Below, in pieces: positions 40,710 through 64,000 of a stretch of DNA of 64,000 nt. The position numbers and the translations under genes are program-made. The DNA is from Pelomyxa schiedti (Eukaryota > Protista > Evosea): NCBI GenBank assembly GCA_020536535.1, contig JAHLWZ010000197.1, forward strand, positions 62,001 through 126,000, in the 5' to 3' direction. Each line of letters opens with the position of its first letter. Position 1 is the first letter of the stretch. Below the pieces are notes generated by a model. The model saw only the letters and a list, made by a program, of their open reading frames with translations. It had not been told where the DNA came from and did no database searches.

Positions 40710-43700
40710 TTAGGAGAGAATATTGAGGTTGTAACGGGGAGAGGAGGCAGCATCGAGGAATGAGATCAAAGCACGAGCAGCAGCAGGCACGTCACGCAGT
40801 GCCATGTTGCAATAAACAAGACTCATCACTTCATTCACTGTGGCTTGAAGTGGTTCGAATGTGGGTGATGTCACTGAGGGAACAACGTCTGTGCCGAACC
40901 GCAGCCCGTTGTGCTGGAAGACATCTATCACAGTCTGCTTTTGCACCTCCAGAAGTGCTTGTTGAATGGTGGTGAGCAGGTCCTCCTCACGGACTGGCTG
41001 TACAGTTGCTGTTGCTGTTGTTGCTGGGGTTGTTGACTGGTCTGGCGGCTGTGTGCTGGGTGTGGTGGCAGGCTGGGCCGAAGTCGGAGGGGATGGATTC
41101 TGTGCCCGCTGTTGTTGTTGGATGTGGGTGACGAATGTGGTGATGACCTGGTGTGGGAGTGACAGGAGCGCACCGCAAGCGAGGAACGCCACGCGTGAGG
41201 TGGGCCGACTGTTGGGTTCCCGCTCAAGGAGCCACCCAACAAGCCCGGAGACCAAAGCGGGCGTGATTGTGGGATCGGTGTGAGGTTCGTGTGTGAGGGA
41301 GGAGCAGTCTGGGACGACGGGAGGGAGTGTGGTGTCTCGGATAAGGTTGCTGTTCACCTGGTTCTCATTGGTGAATGGATGCCAGCCGGAAACGGCTTCA
41401 AAGAGAACACACCCGACAGCCCACACGTCGTTCTTGAGAAGTGGGAATTCTCGTTCTGCTTGAATCACTTCAGGTGCCCGGTTTTGGGCATTCCCAGTGA
41501 ATGTTTCGCCCTTGGGCAAAACCAGAGGGTTCCCGTCTTCGCAGAACACGGCAGTTCCGAGGTCACAGAGTGCCCAGATGTTTCCTTTGATGTGTGGCCT
41601 CTCCATCAGGAGGATGTTGTCGGGCTTGATGTCACAGTGGAACCACCCTCGCGTGTTGAGGTGATCAACCGCACACAGCACGCAAAATGCGAGCTGGAGC
41701 AAATCCTTTGCGTGGCTAAGTGGTGGGGCCTGGTTCTGAAGAGACAAAGACTGTGCTTGTGTGGGTGACACTTCAGGATGTAGTGCCTCCCCGTTACTGA
41801 GCCGAGGAAAAATGATGGATTCCAGGGTGCACCTTCCCAGTTCCATTGTCATGAATGTAGTCCGCTGGTAAACTGTAATTGCTCTACGACCCTCACGGCA
41901 CCCTGACACCCAATTTCGGTTGGCATCAACGATTGTGTAGTCACCTCTCAAGCTCTCCTTGATGAGTGAGAGTGAAGTGTCACCACGGAAATGGTTGAAA
42001 ACATTTGTGAAGCACCAATGTGGGTGCATCACAGCAACTTCATATTCCCTTTCAAACTCTGTTCTCAATTGAAGGGTCCTCATTCCAGCACTGTAGTTGA
42101 ACATCATTTTCAATGCAACCTCAGTTGGCGCACTGTGTGCTCCCCTACTGACACTCGACCACTTTGGGAATGCAACAGGAACTTTGCACACAGTTCCGAA
42201 GGACCCGTTGGCAATGAAGGTTGCTCTTGTCAGATCGAGATCGTTTGTTTCCACGAGTGCCATCACTCCTTTCTGGAACCCACAGAGAACTGTTTCCAGG
42301 ACAGAAGCCATTGATAGGGTGTAGGCGTGTTCAAGAGCACTCTTTTGCGTATTGAGGGAATCATTCTTTTCGGCGATAAGTGCCGATTCCTGTTGGAGTA
42401 CACTGTAATTCTTCTCATGTGCCTCTCTTTGCTGCTGTAGTGCTGATTCTTTTTCAAGTTCAAGCTCTTTTTTTTGTTGTTCAAGAGCCTTGTGCTTATC
42501 AGTCGACAGCACCGCCTCGTGCTTCCTCAGGGCGGCCTGGTTTTCACTGTTGAGGGCTAAAGCTTGCTGCCTCAAGGCTTGTTGCATTTCTACCTCGAGT
42601 GCCCTTCTTTGTTTGTGTAATGATGTTTCCTTTTCGACTTCTAGTGCGGTTTTTTGTTGCTCAAGTGCAATTTTCTTCTCCATATCAAGCACAGCCTTGA
42701 GTTGAGTAAGTGCCACTTGTTTTTCATATATGAGACTGGGAGATTGCTGCTTTTGTATGCTTAATTGGTGGTGGGTCATTTCTGTAGAGGGATCCACTTT
42801 TTCTGTCTCGAGTTCACTTTCTTCATTCAGTGGCGATTTTTGTCGTGTCAGTGCCCTACACTCTTCAGAAACTCTCGTTTTTTCGTCCAGTGGCAAATGG
42901 GGGAGAATATCCCCAAACTGAAGAGGTGAACAGGGTATTACTCTATCAAAAGACTAACCTGTTTCTTTACATTGTCAAGCTGTTGTCGGAAAAGTCTGAG
43001 TGACACTTGGGATGTTGTGAGGGAGTGATGTAACTCTGAAAGTTCACCAGCTGTTTTAAGGTACAAATTAAATTGCTTGCAACAGGACACAACAGCGGGA
43101 ATGCATTCCAGGTATTGCATGAGAGCAAGTCCTTCTTGTATGAAAGAAGGGTAATTATGCAGCACTGAGAAGTACCCATCTCTGATGGCGTGTGGAAATT
43201 TTTCTTCAGGGGGATTATGGAAAAGAGTTACGCACATAATTTGGGTCTCCTCGGTGCTTCCTTTGTTCTTCTCGGCTGCGGCGTGCAAGTCTTTTATCTG
43301 GTTTGATTATTAGTGTTCAGTTTATTTGTTTGTCAATCCCACGAACCTGCCTGAGCCACAGTGTGCCATCGGTAAGTTGCTGCAAGTCGCGAACAACGTT
43401 ACCAACAATTTCATCAAGATCGCCAGGTGGAACCTCCTTCTCTCCCTGTATTAATAATAGGTCGCAGCAGGTAAAAAACAAAAAGGGGGGAGGTGAGAGG
43501 GGCGGGAGGAAGAGGTACATGGTGCGTCTTTGTGTAATCCAAGAAGTAAACCTCAAAGAAAGCACTGCTGTTGACCAAGAAGTATCTCAACTGTTTTGGG
43601 GAGTTTCCAAGTTAGAAAATACAGCACCAAAGAAAAAGGAGGGAGAAATACGGCACGAAATGTTTGTTCTCCCATGGGAATTGACCTGCGAACCTCTTTG

Positions 43701-46700
43701 CAGCACTGCTCCATGTCACACAACATGCCGCTTTCTCTCTGTGGTTTTTTTTTTTTTTTTGTGGTGAGTGAAGGGGAGAAAGAGGGAATGATTTTCACGG
43801 CACATTTACATCAAATTCCACAGGTCTGAGATGAACTCTTCCTTTTTGTTCAAGCCAATCCCGCACAATCTGCAGGTGGTGAAGCTGCTCTTTGAACTCC
43901 AAGAAGCGCTTGTAAACTTGTCTCATGTCTGGCAATTTGACATCTGGGAACAACGTTTTGCAGATTTCAACAAATTGCAGGTATTGTGTGTTCTCAACTG
44001 TGGGTTCCTTTCTTGGTGGCACTGCCGCTTCTGATGCTGTGTTGCTTGGTATCACTATTTTAAGTCTACACAGCAACACGATAAGAGGAATTGAAATTTA
44101 GGCAAATGCGAGGATACATACAGTTGGTCACCAGCAAAAGCTTTGACCTCTTGCAGTGTGACTCGGTTGTCACAGATCCTGTCAACTTGTTCTCTGATGG
44201 TGTCACACAACTGTTTTTTGGTTGTTCAGAGGCTTATGGTAATGTACAAAAGATGTAACTTGTTGACAGCCTGTTTCATAGTTTCCGAAAAATGGGTGAT
44301 CCAAATGCAAGTCCCTGAATCGCAACAAGGAAAGAACGGCTGGGGTGAGCTTCATGACTTCCTCAACTGCCATCATGCACCTTGGGCACACACTTTCGTT
44401 CAAAACTGCAATGATAAAAGAGCTCTCTCTCTCCCGTTTCGAGAGGTTGGGGAGGTGTCGTTCGAGCCATCCCCCAAGAGCACAAAGCTGGCTTGAGATC
44501 GATTTGCCTGATGGTGTTTCGGCACTGTTCGAGAATTGACATTTGAAGAAAAAGAAAAAAAAGTGGCACTGTGGGGGTAACAAGAGGGTATAATATACCT
44601 GACAACAAGAGAAGCTGGGACAAAAAAAGTGAGAAAAAAGGGGAATTCACCAAGTGATGGGATACCAAAAGTCTTGAGCATGAGAAAGAACAGTGGTGAC
44701 TGCCTTTGATTGGGTTTTTCCATTTCATGCTGGAACAACGACCTCACGGTGTTGGTAAATTGCCGTGACAGTGGTTTCACATCAACCTGGTTTCCTTGAG
44801 ATAAAAAGAAAAAAAAAAAGTGGGAAGAGGAAGGGTCAACTCACAATTTTCATTATATCTTTCAATACCACGATGTCACGATCATCCTCAAACGAAAACA
44901 GGTTTGAGTATTCAGGGCAGTAAAGTGAAACCCGGATGAATGGAACAATGTATCTGTGTGTATTGCATTGATAAATAGAAAGAAATGAGGGGTCAGGGCC
45001 ACACTCACATGAAACTGCACTTGAATGACTTGTAGAGCAAGTCACGCAATGGGAGGAATTTAACCCTGGGATCACCAGACTGTGGATCGAAGTTGTGTCG
45101 GGAAACAAGTATTTGGGCATATTTGTCCAACACCCAACCAATTTGATGTGGTTCCCACACATTTGCATGGCTCTCCAAGACACTTTGGAGAATTTTGCGT
45201 TCAAGGATCTTCACTGGAATTCTACCATCCCCATTTTCAGATTTCAGAAAGCAAAAAAAAGAGACAAGCTTACAGTTGGAGCTCTGCAAATGAGGAAGGT
45301 GGTGACAATTGAAGAAAATGGGTCACTGATGCATCGAAGAACTTGAGAGTATCTTCTGACAATGTGGATCTAATGGCCTCAAGTCCATACTGTAGTGTTC
45401 TCTGGAAAGGCAAAACAAAGAGAGGAGGGAAAAGTAACAACAAAACAAAAAACAAAAAACAAAAAACCAAACCTCCAAGAAAGGAGCGGTGATAGACTCG
45501 TTCTGTGCTCTGGGAAGGAAGTGAGAATGAAGAAAAGGAATTGGAAGGCGCAAACAGATCTTCCAGACCAGCAGCTAATGTGACCCGCTCCAACCAGTAC
45601 CACCACTCTCCCATCCTCGGTACATTGTCAGTCTCTCCTCGTCTCGGAGAAGGGCATGTGAGGTTGAGCAAATCATGGTAACACTCGCCGAGTTTCTAAA
45701 TAAAAATAAATAATGGTGGTGAGTTCCAGAAACGGTGGGTTGGGAGATGGAAAGATGAGGAAAAAAAGATGATTGGAGGAGACAAACCCGAGTTCCCTCA
45801 GTGTTCCCTTTGGGAATAGACCAGCCACCAGGACAAATCGAATAGACGCTTTTCACAACAAGATCACATGTTGCCTGTGCACTTTCGCGGTCTGCACCTC
45901 TGAGTTCCCTCTCAAAGAGCTTTACAGCACCTTGCAACACACTCAGTGACACCTGTGGTGGCATCTTTGCCGAGAGTTGTTTGTAAAGAACTGGTGGTCT
46001 GAATTCCCAGAAACAGGTGAGAGAAGGTTCAACAAACAAATTGACAAAACATACTTGTTGAAGAAGTCAACAATAAGCCTGGGAGAAATTCGTGGGAAGA
46101 ACCGGTCCTGAACAAAACTGTCCCATCGATTCAGGAGCTGGTTGTCAACAATAAACAAGGAAAAAAGGTGTTCCACAAAAGAGGGAAAGAAAAACCTGGA
46201 ACTCATCTTGGATCCCTTTTACAAAATTCAGCGCCAAGTGCAGGATTTGAAGTTGAAGTTCACGTTGTGGCTGTTTGTTGTGTAAGTGAGCAAACAGAAA
46301 TTAGGAATAAGGAATACAGTTAACAAGGTGCGTTGTAGAAGAATACTTGAACACCTGGAAGCCAATAGGCCCCCAATGAGGTCAAAAAGAGAGGGATCCT
46401 CTTGTTGAAGCACTTTCAGTGACTGAATGAGCTGTTAAGAACATTAAATTTATAGAGAGCTCACTCTTAGGATTACGGCATCTTTTGCTGCCACCATGGT
46501 CTCATCAGTAGAGGGAGATTGGAAAATGGTGTCACACAGACAACTGGCAACTTCAACCAGACATTCTCCTGTCTCCTTTTCTGGCTTCCTGCAAATTCCA
46601 TCTTCCCTGAGAAAAACCAGTTAAAAAAAAGAGGAAGAGCAAACGATACAGTTCGATTCTGGAGAGGAAGATAACTCGAGCAGTCTCAGCAACAGACAAA

Positions 46701-47121
46701 TTAAGAACATGGCATTATCAAACAGGTGACTACCAGAGACAGAACCACGCCCAGGCAGCATCTTTAGACCCCGTATGGCCTCCGTCAACCCCCCAGCCAT
46801 CCACGACACGTGTGTCCCAAAATCGGGGTTGTTCTTACTTCCGTTCCATTGGTCAAACTCATCCAGCAACTTCATTACCTGCGCCTTGTCCACCAAAGTA
46901 AATGGTGCCGTGGATGTCAATGTCGGCGCTACTGCTGGTGTTGGTGTTGCTGTAGCTGCTTTTGGCGCTGTTGGTTCAGCGGGACTGGCTGGAAGTGAAT
47001 CTATTCTCTCCCGGGCAACTCCTGGCATACCAGACAAAAGAATGTAGAACTGTGTCGCGGCGTCTTTCGGCCCCGTCGTCCTCTTGCCACCACCTGTAAG
47101 GAAACGAAACAAGCCAGCCAT
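40710..47121 (-). CDS. Chimeric gene copy 1: RNF213-like N-terminal module + coiled coil + PINK1-like non-RD protein kinase
   Basis: Exons 42959-47121 are paralogous to 32031-36256 of the giant gene. After intron 42918-42958, the terminal exon encodes IANGSFGTV, ALKMMFNY, HCDIKPDN, DLG, GNAQNRAPE and KNDVWAVG. Confidence 0.88.
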
Positions 47122-47200
47122 TGTTGTTCAGGTTGGAAAAAAAGTTCGTTCGCCGTCTTCTGGGAAGAACACTCGAGAATCACAAAAATTTGGGCCTTCT

Positions 47201-50200
47201 TTAGGAGAGAATATTGAGGTTGTAAAGGGGTGACGAGGCAGCATTGAGGAAAGCGAACAAAGCACGAGCGGCAGCAGGCACATCACGCAACGCCATGTTA
47301 CAATAAACAAGCTTGATCAGTTCCTTCACAGTGGTGTCAAATGGCTGAAACGTGGGTGATGTCATGGACGGCACAACATCAACACCAAAGCGCCGGCCGT
47401 TGCGTTGGAAGATGTCAGTCAAGTTCTGCTTGTGCACCTGTAGAAGAGCCAGGTGCATGGCCGCGACCAGATCCTCAGGAATCGGCTGCGGTTGTGTGGG
47501 TGAATTCAGGGGCGCCCCTTGTGGCTGTTGCATCTCTAGTTCCGGAATTTGTTGTTGGTAGTCGAGGAACGTCATGATGAGCGGGAGCGGGAGGGAAAAC
47601 AGAGCGCCGCAGGCCAAGAGTGCCTCGTGCGAAGTGGGCCTGCGGCTGGGGTCCCGCTCAAGCAGCCACCCAACAAGCCCGCCAACGCATGATGGTGTAC
47701 TTATGGGATCCGGCTGGCCACTGGCGCTTGGATCAGAGTTGCCAGAGAGGGAAGATACCTCGGGGATGAGGGGAGGGAGTGCGGTGTTGCGTATAAGGCT
47801 GATGTTAACTTGGTTCTCAGTGAATAACGGGTTCCAGCCGGCAACGGCCTGAAAGAGAACGCAGCCGACGGCCCACACGTCGTTTTTGAGAAGCGGGAAC
47901 TCCCGAAGTTGCTGGGTGACTTCAGGTGACCTGTTCCCTGGATTTCCACTGAAGGACTCACCTGGGGGTAAAACCAGAGGGTTCCCGCCTTCGCAAAATA
48001 CAGCGGTTCCAAAGTCACAGAGAGCCCAGATGTTTCCTTTGATGTGTGGCCTCTCCATCAGCAGGATGTTGTCAGACTTGATGTCACAGTGGAACCACCC
48101 TCGCGAGTTGAGGTGGTCAACCGCACACAGCACGCAAAACGCGAGCTGAAGCAGGTCCCTCGCAGTGTCGAGCACAGAATGTTGATGTTGAATACTGCTG
48201 AACTTGGAGGAAATTATGGATTCCAGTGTGCACTTTCCCAGCTCCATTGTCATGTACGTGGTTCGCTGGTACACTGTGATTGCTCTGCCACCCTGACGGC
48301 ATCCTGATACCCATTTACAGTTTGCATCCATTACTGTATAGTCCCCTCTCAATTTTTCTTCAATCAAAGACAGTAAAGTGTCACCTTGGAAATGGCTAAA
48401 TACATTTGTGAAGCACCAGTGTGGGTGCGTAACTAATAATTCATACTCCCTTTGGAACTGTGTTTTAAGCTGGAGGGTCTTCATTCCAGCACTGTAATTG
48501 AACATCATCTTCACTGCAACTTCTGTTGATAATCTATGAGGGCCACCAGTGGTCTGTACCAGATTCGAGAGTACAACAGGAACTTTGCACACAGTCCCAA
48601 ATGAGCCGTTGGCAATGAAGGTTGCTCTTGTCAGGTCAAGTTCGTTCAGTTCCACCAATGCCATAGCACCTTTCTGGAATACACAGATAGCTACTTCCAG
48701 GTTATTAGCCATCTCCAGGGTGTATATTTGTTCCAGTGCACTGTTTTCCAATGTGAGAGATTTGTTCCTTTCAGTATTGAGTGCTCGCTCCTGTTCAAGT
48801 ACACGTTGCATCTCCGCTGACGAACTTCTTGGCTGGTATAGTGGGCTTTCTGCTTGAAGGGCAATATTTTGTGGTTCCAGGGAATTCTGTAGTATTTTGG
48901 GTAAAATATCCTCGAACTAGATAGTATGGTGAGAAACAAAAGGTTGGCAAAAGCCTAACTTGTTTCTTCAGATCTTCGATGTGTTGTGGGATTGTCTCCA
49001 GTGAGACCGGCGATTTTGTGAGGGAGTGGTACAAATTTAAAAGGTCATCAGCCGCTTTAATGCATAAATTGAATTGCTTGCAACAGTAGACGACAGAGGG
49101 AATGAACTCAAGGAATCGAATGAGATCAAGTCCTTCTTGGAGGAAGTGAGCAAAATTCAATGATTCTTGCCCCTTTTCTGAGAAGAACTTGTGACTGATG
49201 ATAGTATGTTAGTGAAGTTTTTTGAGTATGGGTTTTTTAGCTACTGGCAAAAAAAAAAAAAAAAACAATTGTCACATACATAATTTGCCCTTCCTCCGTG
49301 CTGCCGTTTTTTCCCGTCGCGGCTGCTTTTTGTAAGTCTTTTACCTGTGTGGCGTGTGTTGGTGGCCTGTGTGTCAAGTTTTATCAGAAATTTCAAACCT
49401 GGTTTAGCCCTACAGTGCCATGTGCAAGCAGCTGCAACTCACGTGCAACTGAACCAACAATTTCCTCCAGATCGCCTGGTGGAACATCCTTCTCTCCCTA
49501 AAGTACACTGTATCAGCCCCTACCACACCATAAAAAAAAAAGACTCAAGGCAGTAGAGACAGAATTTTAACGGGAAAGAGGTGGGTGTGTACATAGTTCC
49601 TCTTTGTTAAGTTCATGAAGTAAACCTTAAAGAAAGCACTTTTCTTCACCAAGAAGTATTTCAGCTGTTTTTGGGAGTTGCCAAGGGAGATAAGACACAA
49701 AAGGGAAAAAATACAGCATTAAATGGCTGTTCACGCAAGGGAATTGACTTCCGCAACTCAGTACAACGCTGTTCCAGGTCACATAATGTGACAGTTTCAC
49801 TCTGGTTTTTGTTTTGTTTTGCTTTATTTTTGGATATGATCCAGGAATAGTGCAGTCTGGTGGATGTGTTGCAGTCATTTGGCAAAAGAGTGGAGTAACA
49901 ATACATTGATATCAAATTCCACAGGTCTGAGGTGAACTCTACCGTTTTTTCCAAGCCACTTCCGCACAGTCTGCAGATCATGAATCTGGTTTTTTAATTC
50001 CAGGAATTGATCATAGACTTTCCTCATATCCGGCAAGGCCACTTTTGGGAACAATGTTTTGCACACATCCACAAGTTGTGAATATTGGGTGGTTTCCACT
50101 TCTAGTCTTGGTCTGTGCAACAAATTATGTGTGAAGCACTCAGAGGATACATACAGTTGTTGTTCACCAGCAAAATCTTTGGCCTCTTGTAGGGTGACTC

Positions 50201-52913
50201 TCCTGTCACAGATTTTGTCGACTTGTTCTCGGATGGTTTCGTGCAGCTGCTTTGTGTGAGTATTTCTTCTTTCTATGTGCAGTTTTTCTCACCTGTTGAC
50301 ACCCAGCTTCATAATTTTCAAAAAAAGGGTGGATCAAAGCCAAATCTTTGAATTGAAACAAGGACAGAACAGACGAAGAGAGTTTAGTGACTTCATCAAC
50401 TCCCATCATGCACCTTGGGCACACACTTTCCCTCAGAACTGCAATGACAATCGAACTCTCTCTCTCCTCCTTTGAAAGGTTGGAGAAGTGTGATTCAAGC
50501 CAGCCTCCAAGTGTACACAGTTGTGTTGAGATGGGTAGGCCTGGGGGCATTTCAGTGCTGTTTCTTTGAGTAAGAACCTCTCAATTTTATTGAAGGATTA
50601 TCAATGACATACCTGACAATAAGAGATGCTGAAAAAGGGAAGAACAGTGAGAATAAGGAGAATTGATGAGGTCTTACCAATTGCTTTGAGCATGAGAAGG
50701 AATAGTTGTGACTGTCTTTGTTCTGGTCTTTCCATTTCACACTCAAACAAAGATCTTACAATCTTGGGGAATTGCCTTGACAAAGGTTTCACATCAACCT
50801 TTTTTGTTTGGTCAGACTAAAAAAAAAAAGTTCACGCACATCTTTCATGATGTCTTTCAAGAAGATGAGGTCATGGTCATCCTCAAAGGAAAAGAGATTG
50901 GAGTATTCAGGGCAGTAAAGGGCAATCCGGATGAATGGAACAATATTTCTGTGAGACAAATAAGAAATGAGAGCCTGTGGATACACACATGAAACTGGAA
51001 TTGAATGACTTGTAGAGCAAGTCTTGCAATGGGAGGAATTTGGGCCTGGGATCACCAGACTGTGAGTTCTGGGAAACAAGGAGTTGAGCATATTTGTCCA
51101 ACAACCAACCAATTTGAGTTGGTCCCCACACAAGTGCATTTTTCTCCAAGATACTTCGGAGAATTTCAAGTTCAAGGAACTTGATTGGGATCCTGTAGTT
51201 TGTTATGGGGAAATCAAGGAAGTGAATGTGTATACTGCTGGACAACAGAAAATGGAGAAGGCGGTGATGATTTAAGAAAATGGGTCACTGTTGTGTCAAA
51301 GAACTTGAGAGTGTCTCCTGGCAATGTGGATCTTACAGCCTCAAGTCCATACTGGAGTGTTCTCTGCAAGGATAGAATTAAAAAAACAGGATACCTCAGG
51401 TAAGAAAAATCTTATGAACCTCGAAAAAAGGAGCAATCAGGGCCTGTTTTTGTCCTCTAAAAACTTATGTTTCAAAATGGAGACAAAGAAAAATTGGCAC
51501 AAACAGATCTTCCAGACCAGCAGACACTGTGATGCACTCCAACCCAGACCACCACAATCCCAACCTTTGAGCATTGGTCTCTCCTTCTTTGACAGCAGGG
51601 ATTGTGAGGTTGAGTAAATCGCAATAGCACCTGCAAAGTTCCTGCAATAAATAGGGTTTGGATTTGAGTATTCTGTGAAGATGACAAACCTGGGTTACTT
51701 CAACACTTCCATTTGGAACTGAAAACCCACCAGGACAAACCCAGAAGATATTTTTTATGACCAAATCATGTATTGCCTCAGTTTTAATTGACCTTTCAAT
51801 CAACTTAACAGCACCTTGCAAAACAGTGATTGAAACCATTGGCGGCAATTTTGTGGAAATTTGCTTATAGAGAACTGGTGGCCTTCACTCTGTAATTTAA
51901 TATGTAATATCAAAAGCATAACAGTACCTGTGAAAGAAGTCAAACAGATTTGTGGCTGAAGTGACTTGGATAAACTGGCCAAGAAAAAACTTGTTCCATA
52001 AAGATAGAAACTGTTAACACTTGAGTTGAGATTCTCAAAGGAATGGCCTCACCTGAGACTCATTTTGGATACCTTTAACGTAATGCAATGCCAAGTGGAA
52101 AATTTGAAGTTGGAGTTCATGTTGTGGCTGTGACTGGCATTAAAGGAGGGACTGCCAACAGGTGAAGAAGGAAGAAAGGTACATTTAAGAAAGTGTTTCT
52201 CATAAGGGTCTCATTTGAACACCGTGCAGCCAAAAGATTCATTAACAAGTCAAACAGAGAAGGATCGTCCTGCTGAAGCCCTTCCAATGACTGACCTATC
52301 TATTAAAACCACTGGCAATCTTGAACAAACATACAGAAATGATGAGCTTATCTTTCTCGAACACAAAATCTTCCTCGGAAGATGGAGAATGCCAAATTGC
52401 ATCACTGACAGGGCTCACAACTTCATTGAGAAATGTCAGACCTGCCTCTTTTTGCATCTCTCTCTCAACATTCAATTTCCTGCCAAACCAGTCAGATGCA
52501 CGAGAGAAAGATCGGAAAAGAAAAAGAAAAACCAACTCTAGCAGCCACAGCAACATGTAAATTACAAATGGAGCACTGTCGAACAAGTGGCTGCCATATT
52601 TTGAACCCTGGACAGGGAGGATCGCCAGCCACCGAACGGTGCTCACCAGCCTGCTAATTATCCAAGACACAAACTCCTCAGTTTGTGGGGTGGACCTGCT
52701 CCCCTTCCAATCGTCGAATTCACTGAGTAGCGTGGCGATCTGCCGAGTGAAGTTCGGGTCCAACAGCGCGGTTGGTTTTAGGGTGCTGCTCCCGGGCTGC
52801 TGTTGCCGCCGTTCGGGTAGGCTCTTGAGCAGGTCGATAACTCTCATGGCTGCGTCTTGGGGCCCGGTGGAGACTTTTTGACGCTGACCCAAAACGCGAG
52901 CAAAGAAAGCCAT
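47201..52913 (-). CDS. Chimeric gene copy 2 (most divergent; short coiled coil): RNF213-like N-terminal module + kinase
   Basis: It starts MAFFARVLGQRQKVSTGPQDAA and has the same exon series. The junction intron is 48917-48959. The kinase motifs are AVKMMFNY, HCDIKSDN, DFG and GNPGNRSPE. Confidence 0.88.
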
Positions 52914-53038
52914 GCAGGCGCCGAAGAGCCTCGATCACAACTTGATTTTTTTTTGGGCGACAAGAAACAACTTTCTTGCTTTTTCTTCAAAAAAAGAAAG
53001 AAGAACCCCTTCAGTGCCTATTTAGTTGAAACAAGCCT

Positions 53039-56000
53039 CTAGGAGAGGAGATTGAGGTTGTAACGGGGAGAGGAGGCAGCATCGAGGAATGAGATCAAAG
53101 CACGAGCAGCAGCAGGCACGTCACGCAGTGCCATGTTGCAATAAACAAGACTCATCACTTCATTCACTGTGGCTTGAAGTGGTTCGAATGTGGGTGATGT
53201 CACTGAGGGAACAACGTCTGTGCCGAACCGCAGCCCGTTGTGCTGGAAGACATCTGTCACAGTCCGCTTTTGCACCTCCAGAAGTGCTTGTCGGATGGCG
53301 GTTATCATGTCCTCAGAGATCGATTGCGTGGGTTGAGGGTGTTCACTTGTTGCAGTTGCCGAGGTTGATTGGTTTGGTGGTTGTGTTGACGTGACCGAAG
53401 GGGCCGAATTCTTCTGTGCTCGCTGCTGTTGGATGTGGGTGACGAATGTGGTGATGACCTGTTTCGGGAGTATCAGAAGTGCACTGCAAGTGAGGAGTGC
53501 CTCACGTGAATTGGGGCGTCGGGTGCACTCGCGCTCAAGGAGCCACCCAACAAGCCCGGAGACCAAAGCGGGTGTGATTGTGGGATCGGTGTGGGTGTCA
53601 TGTGTGAGGGAGGAGCAGTCTGGGATGACGGGAGGGAGTGTGGTGTCTCGGATAAGGTTGCTGTTCACCTGGTTCTCAATGGTGAATGGATGCCGGCCAG
53701 AAACGACCTCGTAGAGAACACACCCGACAGCCCACACGTCGTTCTTGAGAAGTGGGAATTCTCGTTCTGCTTGAATCACTTCAGGTGACCGGTTTTGGGC
53801 ATTCCCAGTGAATGTTTCGCCCTTGGGCAAAACCAGAGGGTTCCCACCTTCGCAGAACACGGCAGTTCCGAGGTCACAGAGAGCCCAGATGTTTCCTTTG
53901 ATGTGTGGCCTCTCCATCAGCAGGATGTTGTCGGGCTTGATGTCACAGTGGAACCACCCTCGTGTGTTTAGGTGGTCAACTGCACACAGCACGCAAAACG
54001 CAAGCTGGAGCACATCCTTTGATTGACAAAGTGGATGATGCTGGTTCTGGGGAGACATGGATTGCAGTTGCTGTGATGTTGGGAGAGTGGGCAACACTTC
54101 TGCTGTTTGCTGCTCAATGTTGACGATTCTTGAAGAAATTATGGATTCCAATGTGCACTTTCCCAGTTCCATTGTCATGAACGTGGTTCGCTGATAAACT
54201 GCAATGGCTCTCCGACTGTCGCGGCACCCTGATACCAAATTGCGGTTCGAATCCACAATAGTGTAGTCACCTCTCAAGGACTCCTCAATCAGAGTGAGTA
54301 AAGTGTCACCACGGAAATGATTGAAGACATTTGTGAAGCACCAATGTGGGTGTATCACTGAGACTTCATATTCTCTTTCAAACGCTGTTCTCAATTGGAG
54401 GGTCCTTGGACCAGCACTGTAGTTGAACATCATCTTCAACGCCACCTCTGTCGGGGCACTGTGGGCTCCACTGCTACGCAGCCACTTGGGAAGAACAACA
54501 GGAACTTTGCACACGGTTCCAAATGACCCGTTGGCGATAAAGGTCGCTCTTGTGAGGTCAAGTTCGTTCAGTTCCACAAGTGCCATCACTCCTGTCTGGA
54601 ACCCACAGAGGACTACTTCCAGGTTATGTGCATCTATAGTGTAGGTATGTTCTAGTGCCCTCTTTTCTATGATGAGAGATTCGTTCCTTGCAGTGTTAAA
54701 CTCAGATTCTTGTTGCTGCAGTGCACTGTGTATCTTCTCAAGTGCATTTCTTTGCTGTTGTAGAGAATTTTCTTTTTCCAATTCAGTTACTTTCTTTTGT
54801 TGCTCAAGTGCATTTTGATTCTCGGTTGTAAACATAAGCTCTTGTTTCCTAAGTTCCCCTTGTAGTTCCGCTTCGAATTCACTTCTTTGTTGAAGCAAAG
54901 CCTTTTCTTTTTCAACTTCAAGTGCGATTTTTTGTTTTTCAAGGGCGTGGTGCTTCTCAGTGTTAAGCAGATCTGATAATTGTGTGAGTGCACACTCCTT
55001 TTCACGGTTATGTTTGGCAGCCTGCTCTTCAAGAGCGCGACACAAAGTTTTTTGCTGTAGAAAGGCATTTGGCTTTTCAGACATTGCAACACGATCTTGC
55101 TCCCCCATAAGTGGGAGTAAATGGGATAGAATGTCCTCAAGCTAAAATGGTGAGAAATTTTTGTTTTATCAGAATGACCTGCCTGTTTCTGCACTTTGGA
55201 AAAGTGTAGCGGACACAATTTCAGTGAAACTTGAGAGGTGGTTAGGGAGTGATGCAAATCTGCTAAGTCCTTGGCCGTTTCACTGCATAAATCGTATTGC
55301 TTGCAACAGTATACAGCAGGAGGAATGAAATCCAAGTATTGAAAAAGAGTGAGGCCTTCTTGGAGGTAATGCTCCAAGTCAAATGACGGATCGTAACCCA
55401 ACTCGGAAAAGTACTGAGTTCTATAATGTTCATTAGGATAAATGCTTTGTCAATCACACACATAATTCGGAATTCGGTAGCAATTCCTCTGTTCTCCGCT
55501 GCTTTTTGTATGTCTCTTATCTGGTTTGGCGCGTTAATTGATGATTTTGAGACCACCCATTGACGGCTATTTGTCAAATCACAACCTGGTTGAGCCTTAG
55601 GTTACCAGTCTGAAGTTGCCTCAAATCAGCTGTAACTGCAGATAGAATTTCTTCAAGGTTATCTGGAGGCACTTCCTTATTTCCCTGAAAGATACAAATG
55701 GGCAGCCCTTAAAACCAGGAAGGAAATTATACATAGTTCTTTTTTGTGAAGTCTATGAACCAAAACTCAAAGAAGGCACTGCCATTCACCAAGAAGTATT
55801 TCAACTGTTTTTTGGGGAAATTTGGCGAGCTAAGACAAACAACGTGAAACGAAGGAAAATACAGAATTAAATGGCTGATCACGCAATGGAATTGCCTGGC
55901 GAAGCTCAATGCAACACTGTTCAACACCGCATAATGTTTCTCTCTAATTTTTTAAAAATGTCGTTGTATATTAGATGAAAGGAAATAGTAATGGGCATGT

Positions 56001-59000
56001 CTGCTGAGTGGTACATTGACATCAGAGGTGACAGGTCCGATGTGAACTCTTCCTTTTTGCTCAAGCCAATCCCGCACAACGTGCAGGTGGTGGAGCTGCT
56101 CTTTGACCTCCAGGAACTGACAGTAAACCTGTCCCATGTCCGGCAAATTCACATTAGGGAACAGTGCCTTGCCTATCTCAACAAGTTGAGCATATTGTGT
56201 GCTCTCCCCTGTGGGTTCCTTTTTCGATGACATTCCTGTTTGTGCGATGTGGTGATGTGATTGCTGATCACGCACTGGTGGTCCTGCAGATGTTTTGCTT
56301 GGTGTGTTGGGGGTGTTGCTTTGTGTAGCTATCGTAGGTCTACACCATTGTGAGAGGAAAGGAATTTGATGGTACCAAAAAGAGTACACATACAACTGTT
56401 GTTCTCCAGCAAAAGCTTTTACCTCCTGCAGGGTCACTAGTTTGTTGAAGATTCTGTCAACTTGTTCTTTGATGGTCTCACACAACTTGGTTTTTTTTTT
56501 AGAAGGTGGTTGTAAGATTCAGAGGTCTCACCTGTTGGCAGCCTTGTTCATAGTTTCCAAAAAAAGGGTGTTCTAAGTTCAAGTCCTTGCATTGGAACAA
56601 GGACAGAACAGATGGAGTGAGCTTCATGACTTCATCAACTGCCATCATGCACCTTGGGCACACACTTTCCATCAGAACTGCAATGACAATTGAACTCTCT
56701 CTCTCTTGTTTTGAGAAGCTGGAGAGGTGCAGTTTGAGCCATTCTCCGAGGGTGCAAAGCTGTGTGGAGATTGGTTTCTCTGGAGGGGTTTTGATGCTGA
56801 CAAGAAGAGAGGCTGCAGAAAAAGAAGAATGAGGCCAAAAGAACTCTAAAAATGAGATTGCAATACCAAAAGTCTTGAGCATGAGAAGGAACAGTGGTGA
56901 CTGTATTTGGTCAAGCTTTTCTGCTTCACACTGCAACAACCACCTCACGGTGCTGGGAAATTGCTGTATCAATGGTTTCACATCAACCTTGTTTGTTTAT
57001 TCTTGAGACAAAAAAAAGGGAAGGAAAGGGGGTTCACAAACATCTTTCATGATGTCTCTCAATAAGCCTACATCATGGTCATCCTCAAAAGAAAAGAGAG
57101 TCGAGTATTCAGGGCAGTAAAGTGAAATCCGAATGAATGGAACGATGTTTCTGTTCGCTTCGTCATGGTTTGACTGATACGAGAAATAAGAAGAGAGAGT
57201 TGAGTACAAACATGAAACAGGACTTGAAAGATTTTCGGAACACATCATTCAATGGGAGGAATTTGAGCCTCGGATCGTCAGACTCTGGGTTGAAGTTGTA
57301 TCGAGAAACCAGTTTTTGTGCATATTTGTCCAACACACAACCAATTTGAAGTGGTTCCCACACAACTGCATTGTTCACCAATACACTTCGGAGAAATTCG
57401 AGTTCAAGGAACTTGATGGGAATCCTGTCACCAACACTGTCAAAGAAGAGAAAGAAACAATGAGATGAGAATACTGTTGGAACACAATGTATGAAGAAGG
57501 TGGTGACGATTGAAGGAAATGAGTCACTGATGAACCAAAGAACTTGGAAGTGTTTATTAAAGTGGATTCGACAGCCTCAAGTCCGTACTGGAGTGTTCTC
57601 TGAAGAATCATGATGTGAGATGAGTGAAGGAAAGAAAGCAGAGAGATACAGAGAAATAAGCAAACCTCCAAGAAAGGAGCAGTGAGAGACTGCCTCTGTC
57701 CTCTGCATAAAGAAATGAGGAAGAAAAAGCCAATTCAGGAAGGCACAAACAGATCTTCCAGGCCAGTAGTAGCCAATGCAATCCACTCCAACCAATACCA
57801 CCACTGTCCCATCCTCTGTGCATTGCCAGTCTCTCCTTGTCTCAGAGAAGGGCATGTGAGGTTGAGCAAATCATGGTAACACTTGCTGAGTTCCTGAAAA
57901 AATAGCCGCGATTGTATGAGTGAGAAATGAGGAGATAAAAAAGAATTGCGGAGGAAGGAGACCAACCCGAATTACATCAGTGTTCCCTTTGGGAATGGAA
58001 AAGCCACCAGGACAAATCCAATAACTGTTTTGCACAACAATATCACATGTTGCCTCTGCACTTTCCCGGTCAGCACCTCTGAGTTCCCTCTCAAAGAGCT
58101 TGACAGCACCTTGCAACACACTCAGTGACACCATTGGTGACATCTTCAATGAGAGTTGCTTGTAAAGAACTGGTGGTCTGAACAGGTGAGAGAAGGTTCC
58201 ACAAACAAATTGGAAAAAACACACTTGTTGAAAAAATCAACAATAAGACTGGGAGAACTTCGTGGGAAGAACTGTTCTTGAACAAAATTGTTCCATGCAT
58301 AAACATAAAGGAGCTGGTTTTCAAAAATAAACCATAAATAAAGGCAGTGTTTAAAAAAAAAAAACCTGATGGTCATTTTGAATCCCTTTGATGAAGTTCA
58401 GTGTCAAGTGCAAAATTTGAAGTTGAAGTTCATATTTGGGCTATTTGTTCAGCTGGCAAGTGAGCAGTCAAAAAAAAAAAATTTAGAATGATACAGTCAG
58501 ATATGTGCTTTGCAGAATAGCCACATTTGAACACCTGCAACCTAAAAGCTGCACAAGCAAGTCAAACAGAGAAGAATCTTCTTGTTGCAGCCCTCTCAAT
58601 GCCTGTGGCAAGGTGTTAAAGAAAACCAAGAAAAACAACAGGAAAATAGACAGTTAAGATGACGTCATCTTTTTCAGCCACCATTGTTTCGTCAGGTGAT
58701 GGTGAATGAAAAATGGAATCAAGGACTTCACTTGCAGCTTCAATCAGAAAATTGAGAGCCTCCTCCCTCTTCTGCAGAGTTTTCTCGAAAGAAAGCTCCC
58801 TGTGGAAAGTATAAACACAGAAGGAAGCTGTCTTGTTGTGGGGCATTGTCTTCAAAAACAAAAATGCAATTACAGCAGCCACGCAACTCGAGGAGCCTCA
58901 GGAGCATGTAAATGAAAAACGGAGCGTTGTCAAATAAGTAACTTCCATATCTGGAGCCGTGTCCCAACAGAGTAATCAAATACCTCACCGCGGTCAACAA

Positions 59001-59300
59001 CCCCCCGATGATCCACGACACGTGCTCTCCGAATTGTGGGTTGGTCTTGCTCTTGTTCCACTCGTCAAACTCGTTGAGCAGCGTGATCACCTGCCGGGTG
59101 AAATTCTTGTCCGGAAGTGGTGAGTGCAAGGGCGACGGCAAGTTGGGCTCTTCCGGTGGCAATGACGCGATGTAGTTGCCTATCCCGTCCTTTATCGCCA
59201 CCCCAAGTAGCGCATTCAGTTGCGCTGCGGCGTCGTCGGGCCCGGTCGTTGATCCTTTGGGACGACCCATCAGACGGCCGAGAAACGGGATGTAATCCAT
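53039..59300 (-). CDS. Chimeric gene copy 3: RNF213-like N-terminal module + coiled coil + kinase
   Basis: It starts MDYIPFLGRLMGRPKGSTTGPDDAAAQL, very close to the giant gene's start. The junction intron is 55142-55182 (GC-AG), followed by a 689-aa terminal kinase ORF. Confidence 0.88.
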
Positions 59301-59677
59301 GCTCTGGTTTGGCGAGGTGACTTCGTGTAGCTGTAGTTCTAATCACTGATGTATTTCTGGGAAAACTAGGAGTAGATTCTCCTAGTTTAGTGCCCGCGCA
59401 AGGCGGGAACAACATTGTAGTTGCTCAAGCAACCAAGTAGTCAACAATATACTTGTTTGTATTCGGGCTTCTTTCTCCCTTACACAAGTAAAACAACAAC
59501 CATCAACCCCAGCACACTCACAGGGGAGCTGTGTGCTTTGTTAGCCAGTGGAACATTTTGCTGAAGACAGCTTAGGGTTTTCCATGCCGCAAAGCTGATG
59601 CCATCTGGTCCTGGGGCTGATTTGGATTTGAAGGAGAGAGCATATCTGGATCAGTGGGCGGTGATTTTTTTCCCTAT

Positions 59678-59749
59678 CAAAAAGTGTATCATCACCGCCC
59701 AAAATCACCGCCCGGGCGGTGATTTTGGGCGGTGATGATGCACTTTTTG
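59678..59749. repeat. Near-perfect 72-bp palindrome built from GGGCGGTGAT units
   Basis: caaaaagtgtatcatcaccgcccaaaatcaccgccc|gggcggtgattttgggcggtgatgatgcactttttg has 36-bp arms, no loop and one mismatch. Another gggcggtgattttt unit sits at ~59656. Confidence 0.92.
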
Positions 59750-59760
59750 CAGTCAAATCT

Positions 59761-59860
59761 NNNNNNNNNNNNNNNNNNNNNNNNNNNNNNNNNNNNNNNN
59801 NNNNNNNNNNNNNNNNNNNNNNNNNNNNNNNNNNNNNNNNNNNNNNNNNNNNNNNNNNNN
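59761..59860. other. Assembly gap (100 N placeholder)
   Basis: Run of 100 N. Confidence 1.
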
Positions 59861-62800
59861 TGATGACCTGTTTCGGGAGTATCAGAAGTGCACTGCAAGT
59901 GAGGAGTGCCTCACGTGAATTGGGGCGTCGGGTGCACTCGCGCTCAAGGAGCCACCCAACAAGCCCGGAGACCAAAGCGGGCGAGATTGTGGGATCGGTG
60001 TGGGTGTCATGTGTGAGGGAGGAGCAGTCTGGGACGACGGGAGGGAGTGTGGTGTCTCGGATAAGGTTGTTGTTCACCTGGTTCTCATTGGTGAATGGAT
60101 GCCGGCCGGAAACGACCTCGTAGAGAACACACCCGACAGCCCACACATCGTTCTTGAGAAGTGGGAATTCTCGTTCTGCTTGTATCACTTCAGGTGACCG
60201 GTTTTCAGCATTCCCAGTGAATGTTTCACCCTTGGGCAAAACCAGAGGGTTCCCGTCTTCGCAGAACACGGCAGTTCCGAGGTCGCATAGAGCCCAGATG
60301 TTTCCTTTGATGTGTGGCCTCTCCATCAGGAGGATGTTGTCGGGCTTGATGTCACAGTGGAACCACCCTCGTGTGTTGAGGTGATCAACTGCACACAGCA
60401 CGCAGAACGCAAGCTGGAGCACATCCTTTGATTGACAAAGTGGATGATGCTGGTTCTGGGGAGACATGGACTGCAGTTGCTGTGATGTTGGGACAGTGGG
60501 CAACACTTCTTCAGTTTGTTGCTCGATGCTGGCGATTCTTGAAGAAATGAGGGACTCCAATGTACACTTTCCCAGTTCCATTGTCATGAAAGTCGTTCGT
60601 TGGTAAACTGCAATGGCTCTTCGACTGTCGCGGCACCCTGAGACCCAATTGCGGTTCGAATCCACAATTGTGTAGTTACCTCTCAAAGACTCCTCAATCA
60701 GAGTGATTAAAGAGTCACCACGGAAATGGTTGAATACATTTGTGAAGCACCAATGTGGGTTTATCACCGAGACTTCGTATTCTCTTTCAAACTCTGTCCT
60801 CAGTTGGAGGGTCCTTGTGCCAGCACTGTAATTGAACATCATCTTCAACGCCACCTCTGTCGGAGCACTGTGGGCTCCACTACTACGCAGCCACTTGGGA
60901 AGAACAACAGGAACTTTGCACACAGTCCCAAATGAGCCGTTGGCAATAAAGGTTGCTCTTGTCAGGTCAAGTTCGTTCAGTTCCGCAAGTGCCATCACTC
61001 CTTTCTGGAACCCACAGATAGCTACTTCCAGGTTATGTGCATCTATGGTGTAGGTATGTTCTAGTGCCCTCATTTCCATGATGAGAGATTCATTCCTTGC
61101 AGTGTTAAACTCAGATTCTTGTTGCTGCAGTGGACTGTGCATCTTCTCAAGTGCCTTTCTTTGCTGTTGTAGAGAAATTTCTTTTTCCAATTCAGTTGCT
61201 TTCTTTTGTTGCTCAAGTGCATTATGCTTCTCGGTTGTAAGCATAAGCTCCTGTTTCCTAAGAGCCCCTTGCAGTTCCGCTTCGAGTTCACTTCTTTGTT
61301 GATGCAAAGCCTTTTCTTTTTCCACTTCAAGTGCGATTTTTTGTTTTTCAAGAGCGTCGCGCTTCTCAGTGTTAAGCAGCACTGACAATTGTGTGAGTGC
61401 ACACTCCTTTTCACGGTTGTGGTTGGCAGCCTGCTCATCAAGAGCGTTACACAAAGTTTTTTGCTGTCGAAGCTTGTCAGAAAATGCAACACGGTTTTGC
61501 TCCCCCATAAGCGGGAGTAAATGGGACAGAATGTCCTCAAGCTAAAATGGTGAGAAATTGTTGTTTTACAGCTGACCTGCCTGTTTCTTTACTTTGGAAA
61601 AGTGTAGTGGACACATTTTCAGTGAAACTTGAGAGGTGGTCAGGGAGTGATGCAAATCTGCCAAGTCCTTGGCTGTTTCACTACATAACTCGAATTGCTT
61701 GCAACAGTAGACAGCAGGAGGAATGAAATCCAAGTATTGAAAAAGAGTGAGGCCTTCTTGGAGGAAATGCTCCAAGTCAAATGACGATTCGTCACCCAAC
61801 TCGAAAAAGTACTGAGTTCTATAGTGTTCATTAGGGTAAATGTTTTGCTGCTTACGTGGGGTCAGATGTTGTGCAATACATCAAGCACACACATAATTAG
61901 GAATTCGGCAGCGATTCCTCGGTTCTCTGCTGCTTTTTGTATGTCTCTTATCTGTGTTGGAACGTTAACTGATGACCACTCATTGAGGCTTATTTGTCAA
62001 ATCACAACCTGGCTGAGCCTTAGGTTACCAGTCTGAAGTTGCTTCAAATCAGCTGTAACTGCAGATAGAATTTCTTCAAGGGAATCTGGGGGCACTTCCT
62101 TATTTCCCTGAAAGATACAAATGTGCAACCCTTAAAAACAGGAAGGAAATTATACATAGTTCTTTCTCGCGAAGTCTGTGAACAAAAACTCAAAGAAAGC
62201 ACTGTCGTTCACCAAGAAGTATTTCAACTGTTTTTTGTGGAAATTTTGCGAGCTGGGACAAACAACGCGAAACGAATGGGGAAAATACAGCATTTAATGG
62301 CTGGTCACGCAATGGAATTGCCTGGCAAAGCTCAATGCAACACTGTTCAAGGTCACATAATGTTTCGCTCTGGTTTTTTAAAATATCGTCGCATATGAGA
62401 TGAGAGGAACTAGTGCCGAGCGGTACATTGACATCGGCGGTGACGGGGCCGAGGTGAACTCTTCCTTTTTGTTCAAGCCAATCCCGCACAATGCGCAGGT
62501 GGTGGAGCTGCTCTTTGAACTTCAGGAACTGACAGTAAACCTGTCCCATGTCCGGCAAATTCACATGTGGGAACAGTTCCTTGCATATCTCAACAAGTTG
62601 ATCATATTGTGTGCGTTCCATTTTCGATGGCCTTCCTGTTTGTGCGATGTGGTGATGTGATTGTTGTCCGCTCTGATAACGCACTGGTGCTCCAGTAGAT
62701 GTTTTGCTTGGTGTGTTGGGGGTGTCGCTTTGTATAGGTCTATCATCGTAAGAGGAAAGGAATTGAAGGTACCAAAGAGAGTACACATACAGCTGTTGTT

Positions 62801-64000
62801 CACCAGCAAAAGCTTTTACCTCCTGTAGGGTCACTCGTTTGTTGCAGATTCTGTCAACTTGTTCTTGGATGGTGTCATAAAACTGAACTTTACAGTGAGT
62901 TGTTTGTTGGGTTTAGTGTGGAGTGATCTCACCTCTTGGCACCCTGTCTCATAGTTTTTGAAAAAAGGGTGTTCTAGGTTCAAGTCTTTGAGTTGAAACA
63001 AGGACAGAACAGATGGAGTGAGCTTCATGACTTCATCAACCACCATCATGCACCTTGGGCAAACACTTTCCATCAAAACTGCAATGACAATCGAACTCTC
63101 TCTCTCCTTTTTTGAGAGGCGGGAGAGGTGTGGTTTGACCCAGTCTCCAAGTGCACAAAGCTGTGCTGATATTGATTTCCCTGGTGGTGTTTCGATGCTG
63201 TTCGAGAATATAAGTATGCCCACACAACGTGTGGTCAACATGAAGAAACAAGAGCATATTGTGTTGAGGAAAAGAAAAAATAGAGATGCAATACTTGACA
63301 AGAAGAGAGGCTGGAGAAAGAAGAAAAAGAAAAGTGAGGGAAAAAGAATTGAACAAATGATGATGAGATACCAAAAGTCTTGAGCATGAGAAGGAACAGT
63401 GGTGACTGACTTTGATCGAGTTTTTCCATTTCAAGCTGGAACAATGACCTCACGGTGTTGGTAAATTGCCGTGACAGTGGTTTCACATCAACCTGGTTTC
63501 CTTGAGATAAAAAGAAAAAAAAACAGTGGGAAGAGGAAGGGTCAACTCACATCTTTCATTATATCTTTCAATACTGCAATGTCACGATCATCCTCAAACG
63601 AAAACAGGTTTGAGTATTCAGGGCAGTAAAGTGAAACCCGGATGAATGGAACAATGTTTCTGTGTGTATTGCATTGATAAATAGAAAGAAATGAGGGGGT
63701 CAGTGCCACACTCACATGAAACTGCACCTGAATGACTTGTAGAGCAAGTCACGCAATGGGAGGAATTTAACTCTGGGATCACCAGACTGTGGATCGAAGT
63801 TGTGTCGGGAAACAAGTATTTGGGCATATTTGTCCAACACCCAACCAATTTGAAGTGGTTCCCACGCATTTGCATGCCTCTCCAAGACGCTTCGGAGAAT
63901 TTGGAGTTCAAGGAACTTGATTGGGATCCTGTCACCATTATAAGAGTGGAGAAACCAAGAAAGGGGAGGAGAATACTGCTTCAGCTCTGCAAACGTGCAA
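59861..64000 (-). CDS. Chimeric gene copy 4 (5' part beyond window; 3' end lost in assembly gap)
   Basis: The kinase exon is nearly identical to copy 3 up to the N-gap. The junction intron is 61542-61580 (GC-AG). Upstream exons are paralogous to the shared module and continue off the window end. Confidence 0.85.

Follow-up and report, generated by a model that had tools for sequence, protein, structure and literature searches.

A tandem array of kinase genes lies on contig JAHLWZ010000197.1 of the anaerobic amoeba Pelomyxa schiedti, in a single-cell assembly of 52.4 Mb (PMC8887013). We analysed a stretch of 64,000 nucleotides of this contig (positions 62,001 to 126,000, forward strand; hereafter the window, numbered from its first letter). 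In our reading the array probably comprises four paralogous genes, each of which joins a kinase of the PINK1 superfamily, from a clade sister to PINK1 and not orthologous to it, to an N-terminal module duplicated from an adjoining RNF213-like gene.

The kinase gene array and the adjoining RNF213-like gene

Four large open reading frames (ORFs) lie head to tail on the minus strand of the window, about 6.2 kb apart. A first-pass annotation of this sequence had pointed to an array of kinases with PINK1-like motifs here; all four ORFs are in place and every motif that it listed is present. Comparison of the window with itself reveals a four-unit tandem repeat, and the front of each unit also resembles 32.6-34.5 kb of the window. 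Each array gene consists of about 20 small exons (~950 residues) followed by one large last exon, which encodes, in this order, a coiled-coil-like stretch, the kinase domain, a low-complexity linker and a conserved helical tail. The only spliced product that we used is P0027, as given by the database; its 21 exons map on copy 2 (47204-52913) and are separated by introns of about 45-60 nt. The first exon of copy 1 is homologous to P0027 residues 1-116, and the exon 20/21 junction is kept, in frame, in all four copies. The genes are tightly packed, with 79 bp separating copies 1 and 2 and 125 bp separating copies 2 and 3.

The RNF213-like giant gene that adjoins the array (17980-36256) is similar to it over residues 3-952, that is, over the first ~20 exons, in the same order and exon for exon. 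This homology stops exactly at the donor of exon 20 (32031). The array genes therefore consist of the neighbour's front, its body being replaced by a kinase exon, and the neighbour's N-terminal module is, judging from the colinearity, either the source or the sister of the array's front part. The earlier suggestion that the kinases are fused to the N-terminal part of an RNF213-like protein thus stands as far as the copied front of the adjoining gene goes, but does not extend to RNF213 itself, to which the module bears no detectable likeness. The neighbour's own link to RNF213 is a single weak AAA match (31 bits, E 5e-7), and the putative tie of the module to RNF213 runs through it; the ~950-residue module has no match in Pfam, PDB sequences or the ESM Atlas. 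Neither the dynein-like AAA core nor the RING/RZ E3 module of RNF213 is found in the array genes, where the kinase exon replaces everything after exon 20. As the annotation had noted, there is no mitochondrial presequence or transmembrane (TM) segment ahead of the kinase: in the architecture of P0027 the domain is preceded by the ~950-residue module and the coiled coil instead of a mitochondrial anchor, and a hydropathy scan of the region before the kinase picks out only one borderline buried stretch, at residue 564.

The copies differ from one another by a dS of 0.19-0.93, with dN/dS of 0.14-0.22, and the catalytic K, E, D, N and D are invariant across the family alignment, which argues for working genes under purifying selection. 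In single-cell RNA-seq data (Logan contigs) we find an exact 402-nt contig on the tail of copy 2, along with short pieces in the conserved core.

Copy 4 runs into an assembly gap. To the right of the gap, positions 59861-60100 match copy 3 colinearly (98% identity); to the left, positions 59301-59760 resemble neither the tails of copies 1-3 nor anything else in the other copies. In the 655-aa ORF of copy 4, the final ~110 codons thus read through N into unrelated sequence, and this end of the ORF is, on the evidence of the flanks, an artefact; the tail of copy 4 is apparently either absent or concealed by a gap that exceeds 100 bases. A 72-bp palindrome, 97% perfect, adjoins the gap (59678-59749) and may have been created artificially, by amplification or scaffolding, in the single-cell assembly. 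P0029, the 2417-aa model that the database gives for window 53039-64000, is a chimera: from copy 4 it crosses the gap to the N-terminal exons of copy 3, and it ends before the kinase exon of that copy.

Table 1. Positions of the array genes, their parts and the related module of the neighbouring gene (window coordinates)
Feature	Position	Strand	Basis or remark
Large ORF, copy 1	40710-42896	minus	ORF list
Large ORF, copy 2	47201-48811	minus	ORF list
Large ORF, copy 3	53039-55108	minus	ORF list
Large ORF, copy 4	59541-61508	minus	ORF list
Array gene, copy 1, complete	40710-47121	minus	first-exon ATG 47121; last exon 40710-42917 with stop codon
Array gene, copy 2	47201-52913	minus	database protein P0027 (1523 aa); exact exon-by-exon mapping
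Last exon, copy 2	47204-48916 plus stop codon	minus	P0027 mapping
20 small exons of the ~950-aa N-terminal module, copy 2	48960-52913	minus	P0027 mapping
Array gene, copy 3	53039-59300	minus	first exon near 59291-59300 by first-exon homology; last exon 53039-55141
Array gene, copy 4, incomplete	59861-64000	minus	N-terminal exons beyond window end; last exon from 61541, cut by gap at 59860
Exon 20/21 intron, copy 1	42918-42958	minus	41 nt, GT-AG
Exon 20/21 intron, copy 2	48917-48959	minus	43 nt, GT-AG
Exon 20/21 intron, copy 3	55142-55182	minus	41 nt, GC-AG; in-frame join
Exon 20/21 intron, copy 4	61542-61580	minus	39 nt, GC-AG
Coiled-coil-like segment rich in E, K, Q, L, copy 3	54614-55141	minus	translation, composition
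Coiled-coil-like equivalent, copy 1	42291-42917	minus	translation, composition
Coiled-coil-like equivalent, copy 2 (shorter)	48692-48916	minus	translation, composition
Coiled-coil-like equivalent, copy 4	61023-61541	minus	translation, composition
PINK1-like kinase domain, copy 1	41154-42290	minus	Pfam Pkinase E 4.5e-23
PINK1-like kinase domain, copy 2	47561-48691	minus	Pfam Pkinase E 5.3e-23
PINK1-like kinase domain, copy 3 (copy modelled)	53465-54613	minus	Pfam Pkinase E 2.2e-23; AlphaFold2 pLDDT 90.3
PINK1-like kinase domain, copy 4	59874-61022	minus	94% identical to copy 3
Low-complexity linker and helical C-terminal tail (CTE-like), copy 3	53042-53464	minus	alignment; high-pLDDT helices
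Linker and tail equivalent, copy 1	40713-41153	minus	alignment
Linker and tail equivalent, copy 2	47204-47560	minus	alignment
Assembly gap	59761-59860		two sides not continuous coding sequence
Paralogous N-terminal module of the neighbouring RNF213-like gene	32031-36241	minus	colinear with P0027 residues 3-952, 42-77% identity

Elsewhere in the window there are genes for HSP90 (41-1843, plus strand) and a CCHC zinc-knuckle protein (36711-37781, plus strand), and a split peptidase M3 gene (15622-17706, minus strand).

Relationship of the kinases to PINK1

PINK1 (PTEN-induced kinase 1) is KinBase family NKF2. Pfam recognises the window kinases as generic Pkinase only (E ~1e-23). When a profile of 12 family members is searched against the PDB, every PINK1 chain ranks above all other kinases (69-81 bits; E 6e-22 to 4e-18), the best non-PINK1 protein being ROCK2 at 51 bits, and the alignment to PINK1 spans both lobes, including the N-lobe 'alkmmfny'. 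The insect PINK1 motifs that the annotation had cited are recovered, opposite the motifs of the family, in the HMMER alignment to Tribolium PINK1 ('falkmmfnyd', 'gGntalmaPEi', 'ysKaDlWavGaiaYEi'). A profile HMMER search of 1.84 billion representatives retrieves Pelomyxa paralogues, followed by protist and metagenome relatives at 100-200 bits and then by metazoan PINK1 at 64-80 bits over the full domain, with generic kinases at ~30-45 bits per domain. The labels among the matches include Haliotis 'Pink1, mitochondrial-like', with which Gryllus and Globodera proteins group in the tree described below; Rhizamoeba, Gefionella and Paratrimastix are also among the relatives found. Word-index searches returned Pelomyxa paralogues, unnamed metagenome proteins and generic kinases only, with no named PINK1.

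We built the tree with IQ-TREE (98 rows, 339 columns, LG+C20). A PINK1-like superclade that includes the window kinases is separated from generic kinases with support of 100/96, relative to an outgroup of the kinases most similar to the query and not of the full kinome. This superclade, the profile scores and the fold ranking given below bear out the first-pass view that the kinases are related to PINK1. Clade A within it contains animal PINK1 and some protists (98/92), and clade B contains all Pelomyxa rows in the tree, window kinases included, with Paratrimastix and environmental eukaryotes (98/90); the Pelomyxa rows within clade B are monophyletic (98/94). Since the window kinases fall in clade B and animal PINK1 in clade A, they are relatives and not orthologues of PINK1, and the sister position of clade B agrees with the earlier remark that these are not canonical PINK1. 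Clades A and B together are the PINK1-like superfamily, on the grounds of their monophyly, of PINK1 being the best named and solved family by both profile and fold, and of the K-M-M-[FWY]-N motif. The narrower form K-M-M-[FY]-N is present in about 47 collected proteins, and nearly all of those in the tree fall in the superclade. A profile of the wider clade B aligns by hhalign with metazoan PINK1 over 372 columns, through the C-terminal extension (CTE), at E 6e-51.

The model of the copy 3 kinase plus tail, made with AlphaFold2 on a 75-row alignment, has a predicted local distance difference test (pLDDT) score of 90.3 and a predicted template modelling (pTM) score of 0.92. The helical C-terminal extension that had been described from the sequence reappears as a conserved tail with four predicted helices, all confident (390-409, 440-464, 489-503 and 505-519). 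Foldseek places PINK1 at ranks 1-24 (24 of 24), with PINK1 alignments mostly of ~530-555 columns (403-556 overall) versus ~365-395 for nearly all other listed kinases. With VIA-align 2, PINK1 structures give Z 25.2-27.5 over 325-369 aligned residues, to the PINK1 C-terminus, and other kinases do not exceed 293 residues or Z 25.5, a gain of ~60-80 residues for PINK1; the margin in Z is small (27.5 vs 25.5), and in this model-based comparison it is the extra aligned length that carries weight. The PINK1 alignments reach chain residues ~566-581, and the largest of them (369 residues) is with ubiquitin-bound PINK1, 6EQI. A helical CTE packed on the C-lobe is thus predicted at the level of fold for the window kinases; at the level of sequence the CTE is recovered for the wider clade B, and not for the tail of the window subfamily itself.

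For the motif comparison we took the definitions of PINK1 features from PMC5679756 and PMC8828467. Subdomain II reads VALKMMFNYSAG in the copies, copy 2 having VAVKMMFNYSAG, and HPHWCFTNVFNHF is followed by an insertion of ~42 residues in the window kinases. The activation segment is GNAQNRAPE in copy 1, GNPGNRSPE in copy 2, GNAQNRSPE in copy 3 and GNAENRSPE in copy 4, and all copies have KNDVWAVGCVL..G.HPF and LLERE/D....RP. The kinase domain looks catalytically competent, given an invariant set of active-kinase residues: Gly-rich loop, beta3 Lys, alphaC Glu, catalytic Asp/Asn, DxG Asp, APE-like Glu and subdomain XI Arg. The distal 'HP[HN]' of insertion 2 (Ins2), nearly invariant, aligns with PINK1 (the loop of human His271), and a nearly invariant Thr at K+11 lies opposite Tribolium (Tc) Ser207, an autophosphorylation site of PINK1 (PMC5679756). 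A candidate equivalent of PINK1 insertion 3 (Ins3), proposed as a check in the first-pass annotation, is seen as to position and predicted order, the ~42-residue insert between beta4 and beta5 being modelled as a helix and a hairpin with pLDDT above 90, but not as to sequence: hhalign leaves the insert unaligned and it has no sequence likeness to PINK1 Ins3.

Clade B is greatly expanded in Pelomyxa, with dozens of loci. P0008, P0039, P0037 and P0004, from other Pelomyxa contigs, have kinases fused to RING/B-box/NHL (TRIM-like), LRR_6 (annotated NLRC3), ARM and a full actin domain, and in P0046 from Paratrimastix the kinase is fused to ankyrin repeats. These varied fronts suggest that clade B is a modular, perhaps immune-like, signalling family. 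A further contig of the same genome (G000:C676) carries two adjoining PINK1-like kinase genes on the minus strand (L007:3339-4493 and L007:4505-6439). The 384-aa kinase has human PINK1 as its top PDB match (E 5e-24, next family 3e-7) and falls in clade A, among the protist rows on the PINK1 side; the 644-aa kinase has an N-terminal part of ~235 residues that is Ubl-like (similar to ubiquitin-like proteins) by eye and has no Pfam ubiquitin match.

Some clade B kinases come from metagenomes. They lie on the compact contigs L002 (112 kb) and L003 (11 kb), both JGI, and L008, on which nearly all genes lack Pfam matches or ankyrin genes are present; such contigs suggest a giant virus or an unknown protist as their source. 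The contigs of P0053 and P0060, which bear split genes for actin and CTP synthase, are clearly eukaryotic.

Competing explanations and the question of the substrate

Several results weigh against the reading of the array as PINK1-superfamily kinases fused to a duplicated front. A single-sequence phmmer search of the PDB is led by PDK1, MNK and GRK, with no PINK1 in the top 60, and the N-lobe alone retrieves no kinase match, so that the PINK1 signal is seen only with a family profile and not with a single sequence. A profile of the window subfamily tail finds no usable match in the PDB, the PINK1 CTE or the clade B CTE, this tail being too diverged for sequence alignment to the PINK1 CTE. To these are added the narrow outgroup of the tree, the small Z margin and the insert at the Ins3 position, which stays unaligned. 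In the catalytic loop HRD is replaced by HCD, and DLG stands in place of DFG (copy 2 has DFG), although the catalytic Asp, the Asn and the metal-binding Asp are retained. The proximal part of Ins2, which in PINK1 comprises a strand and a helix, is absent, with only ~8 residues between the alphaC Glu and HPH. At K+9, where PINK1 has a Ser (Hs Ser228 in human, Tc Ser205 in Tribolium, Ph Ser202 in Pediculus) that is autophosphorylated and needed for ubiquitin recognition (PMC5679756, PMC8828467), copies 1-4 have Met, Met, Pro and Thr, and the position is variable across the family. As for the gene models, no splice joint that connects the N-terminal module to the kinase exon is seen in the Logan RNA contigs, and an internal ATG in copies 3 and 4 could give a kinase-only product.

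The failure of the single-sequence and N-lobe searches is what one would expect if the kinases formed a generic, fast-evolving family that had come to resemble PINK1 by chance or convergence. We consider this very improbable in view of the 30-bit profile gap over both lobes, the unbroken run of PINK1 among the top 24 Foldseek matches, the support for the superclade, the profile alignment of clade B with PINK1 through the CTE and the near-confinement of K-M-M-[FY]-N bearers in the tree to that superclade. Still harder to credit is that these are true PINK1 orthologues guarding the hydrogenosome-like organelles of the amoeba: PINK1 is the nearest solved and named family and the organism does have mitochondrion-related organelles (PMC8887013), but the window kinases sit in the sister clade, lack a presequence or TM segment before the kinase and have dozens of paralogues, and the same genome encodes, on C676, a kinase that is nearer to PINK1. 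We give equally little credence to the array being a set of decaying duplicates or an assembly artefact of an amplified single-cell genome. The gap and palindrome beside copy 4 and the chimeric model P0029 are in its favour; the divergence of the copies at low dN/dS, the open frames and conserved splice sites in all of them and the coverage of the unit by independent contigs of DNA runs speak against it.

The serious contender, to which we allow only slightly less than an even chance, is that these are ordinary signalling kinases whose substrates are neither ubiquitin nor Ubl, with insert and tail serving folding or regulation within a lineage-specific sensing or immune-like network. It would account for the unconserved Ser228-equivalent, the non-RD HCD loop, the unalignable insert and a large family with differing partners (LRR, ARM, TRIM-NHL and the RNF213-like module). 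It accounts less readily for an insertion of similar size, predicted to be ordered, exactly where PINK1 has its ubiquitin-binding Ins3, for the largest VIA alignment being with the ubiquitin-bound structure, and for the near-invariant Thr at K+11 opposite the autophosphorylation site.

If the array genes are PINK1-superfamily kinases fused to the duplicated module, as we think likely, the module and the coiled coil might serve to localise the protein in the cytosol, perhaps next to the RNF213-like protein, or to oligomerise it there, and the kinase would then phosphorylate a small folded substrate, for which ubiquitin or a Ubl would be the leading candidate, only by analogy with PINK1. Phosphorylation of Ser228/Ser205 is the switch that turns PINK1 into a ubiquitin kinase (PMC5679756, PMC8828467). 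With the equivalent residue not conserved and the Ins3-position insert unalignable, ubiquitin-kinase activity is a plausible hypothesis only: by this analogy we judge it unlikely that the window kinases phosphorylate ubiquitin or a Ubl, and we rate an ordinary protein as substrate no less likely. PINK1 itself phosphorylates ubiquitin and the parkin Ubl at Ser65, and ubiquitin with Ser65 is encoded in the Pelomyxa genome. Genome-wide there are >150 ubiquitin-domain matches, numerous poly-ubiquitin arrays among them, the arrays being spread over a dozen contigs or more (examples of such matches and arrays are C711:61483-63291, C202, C106, C830 and C166). Bolder, and in our estimate distinctly improbable, is the idea that clade B consists of cytosolic ubiquitin/Ubl kinases, to which exon shuffling has at this locus attached the targeting arm of an RNF213-like ubiquitin ligase. 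Were it true, phospho-ubiquitin signalling would be older than animals and not tied to mitochondria, and phospho-ubiquitin would serve amoebal cell-autonomous defence or selective autophagy, with the LRR, TRIM-NHL and ARM fusions as further inputs.

Significance and comparison with known systems

In the searchable literature PINK1 figures as a mitochondrial ubiquitin kinase of animals, present in a single copy. The most recent evolutionary study of PINK1 that we found samples Metazoa only (bioRxiv 10.64898/2026.09.05.749644), and reviews report PINK1 as absent from Entamoeba and Monocercomonoides (PMC9796589, PMC6759080). We found no description of such a clade or architecture in literature on PINK1 in Amoebozoa, protists and the last eukaryotic common ancestor or on NKF2, an absence that is not proof of novelty. 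The PINK1 fold, with an N-lobe insert and CTE, is now seen as a large, selected family in an anaerobic amoeba, in one genome of which a near-canonical branch coexists with a sister branch fused to immune-type or scaffold modules and not to a mitochondrial anchor. Such soluble, presequence-free relatives of PINK1 are a concrete set for testing when ubiquitin-kinase activity arose, and the array shows cleanly how an RNF213-like gene and a kinase can exchange domains at an intron.

The SgK223/SgK269 pseudokinases, which have an N-helix and a C-terminal region (PMC8828467), resemble the window kinases in having a helical C-terminal region packed on the C-lobe. They are dimerisation scaffolds, whereas the window kinases retain all catalytic residues, and they are not near the top of the fold searches with the window kinase model. 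The RNF213/mysterin-like neighbour shares its first ~20 exons with the array (residues 3-952, 42-77% identity), up to the same intron; beyond it the neighbour has an AAA and E3 body and the array genes instead have the exon for coiled coil, kinase and tail. In LRRK/ROCO-type kinases the kinase is joined to ARM, LRR or ankyrin scaffolds, and lineage-specific expansions occur in amoebae. Scaffold N-termini and amoebal expansions are thus common to this type and clade B, but LRRK/ROCO proteins are TKL kinases with a Roc-COR GTPase and the Pelomyxa kinases are PINK1-like, without Roc-COR.

Canonical PINK1 has a mitochondrial targeting sequence, an outer-membrane signal and a TM segment directly before the kinase (PMC8828467), where the window kinases have a 950-residue partner and a coiled coil. 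The window kinases also differ from PINK1 in having HCD/DLG for HRD/DFG, in lacking the proximal Ins2 and the conserved Ser228/Ser205 site, and in extra low-complexity inserts ahead of the tail and in the C-lobe, where the model has helices 161-177 and 204-222 (presumably alphaD/alphaE) on either side. PINK1 is one gene, and its Pelomyxa relatives are dozens of paralogues. With animal PINK1 (Tribolium 7MP8/8UDC, Pediculus 6EQI/7T4K, human 9EIH) they nevertheless have in common the beta3 motif [AV][LI]KMM[FW]N, the distal His-Pro of Ins2, a beta4-beta5 insertion where Ins3 lies, the GNxx..[AS]PE activation segment, K[AN]D.WA.G and, in the model, a helical CTE packed on the C-lobe.

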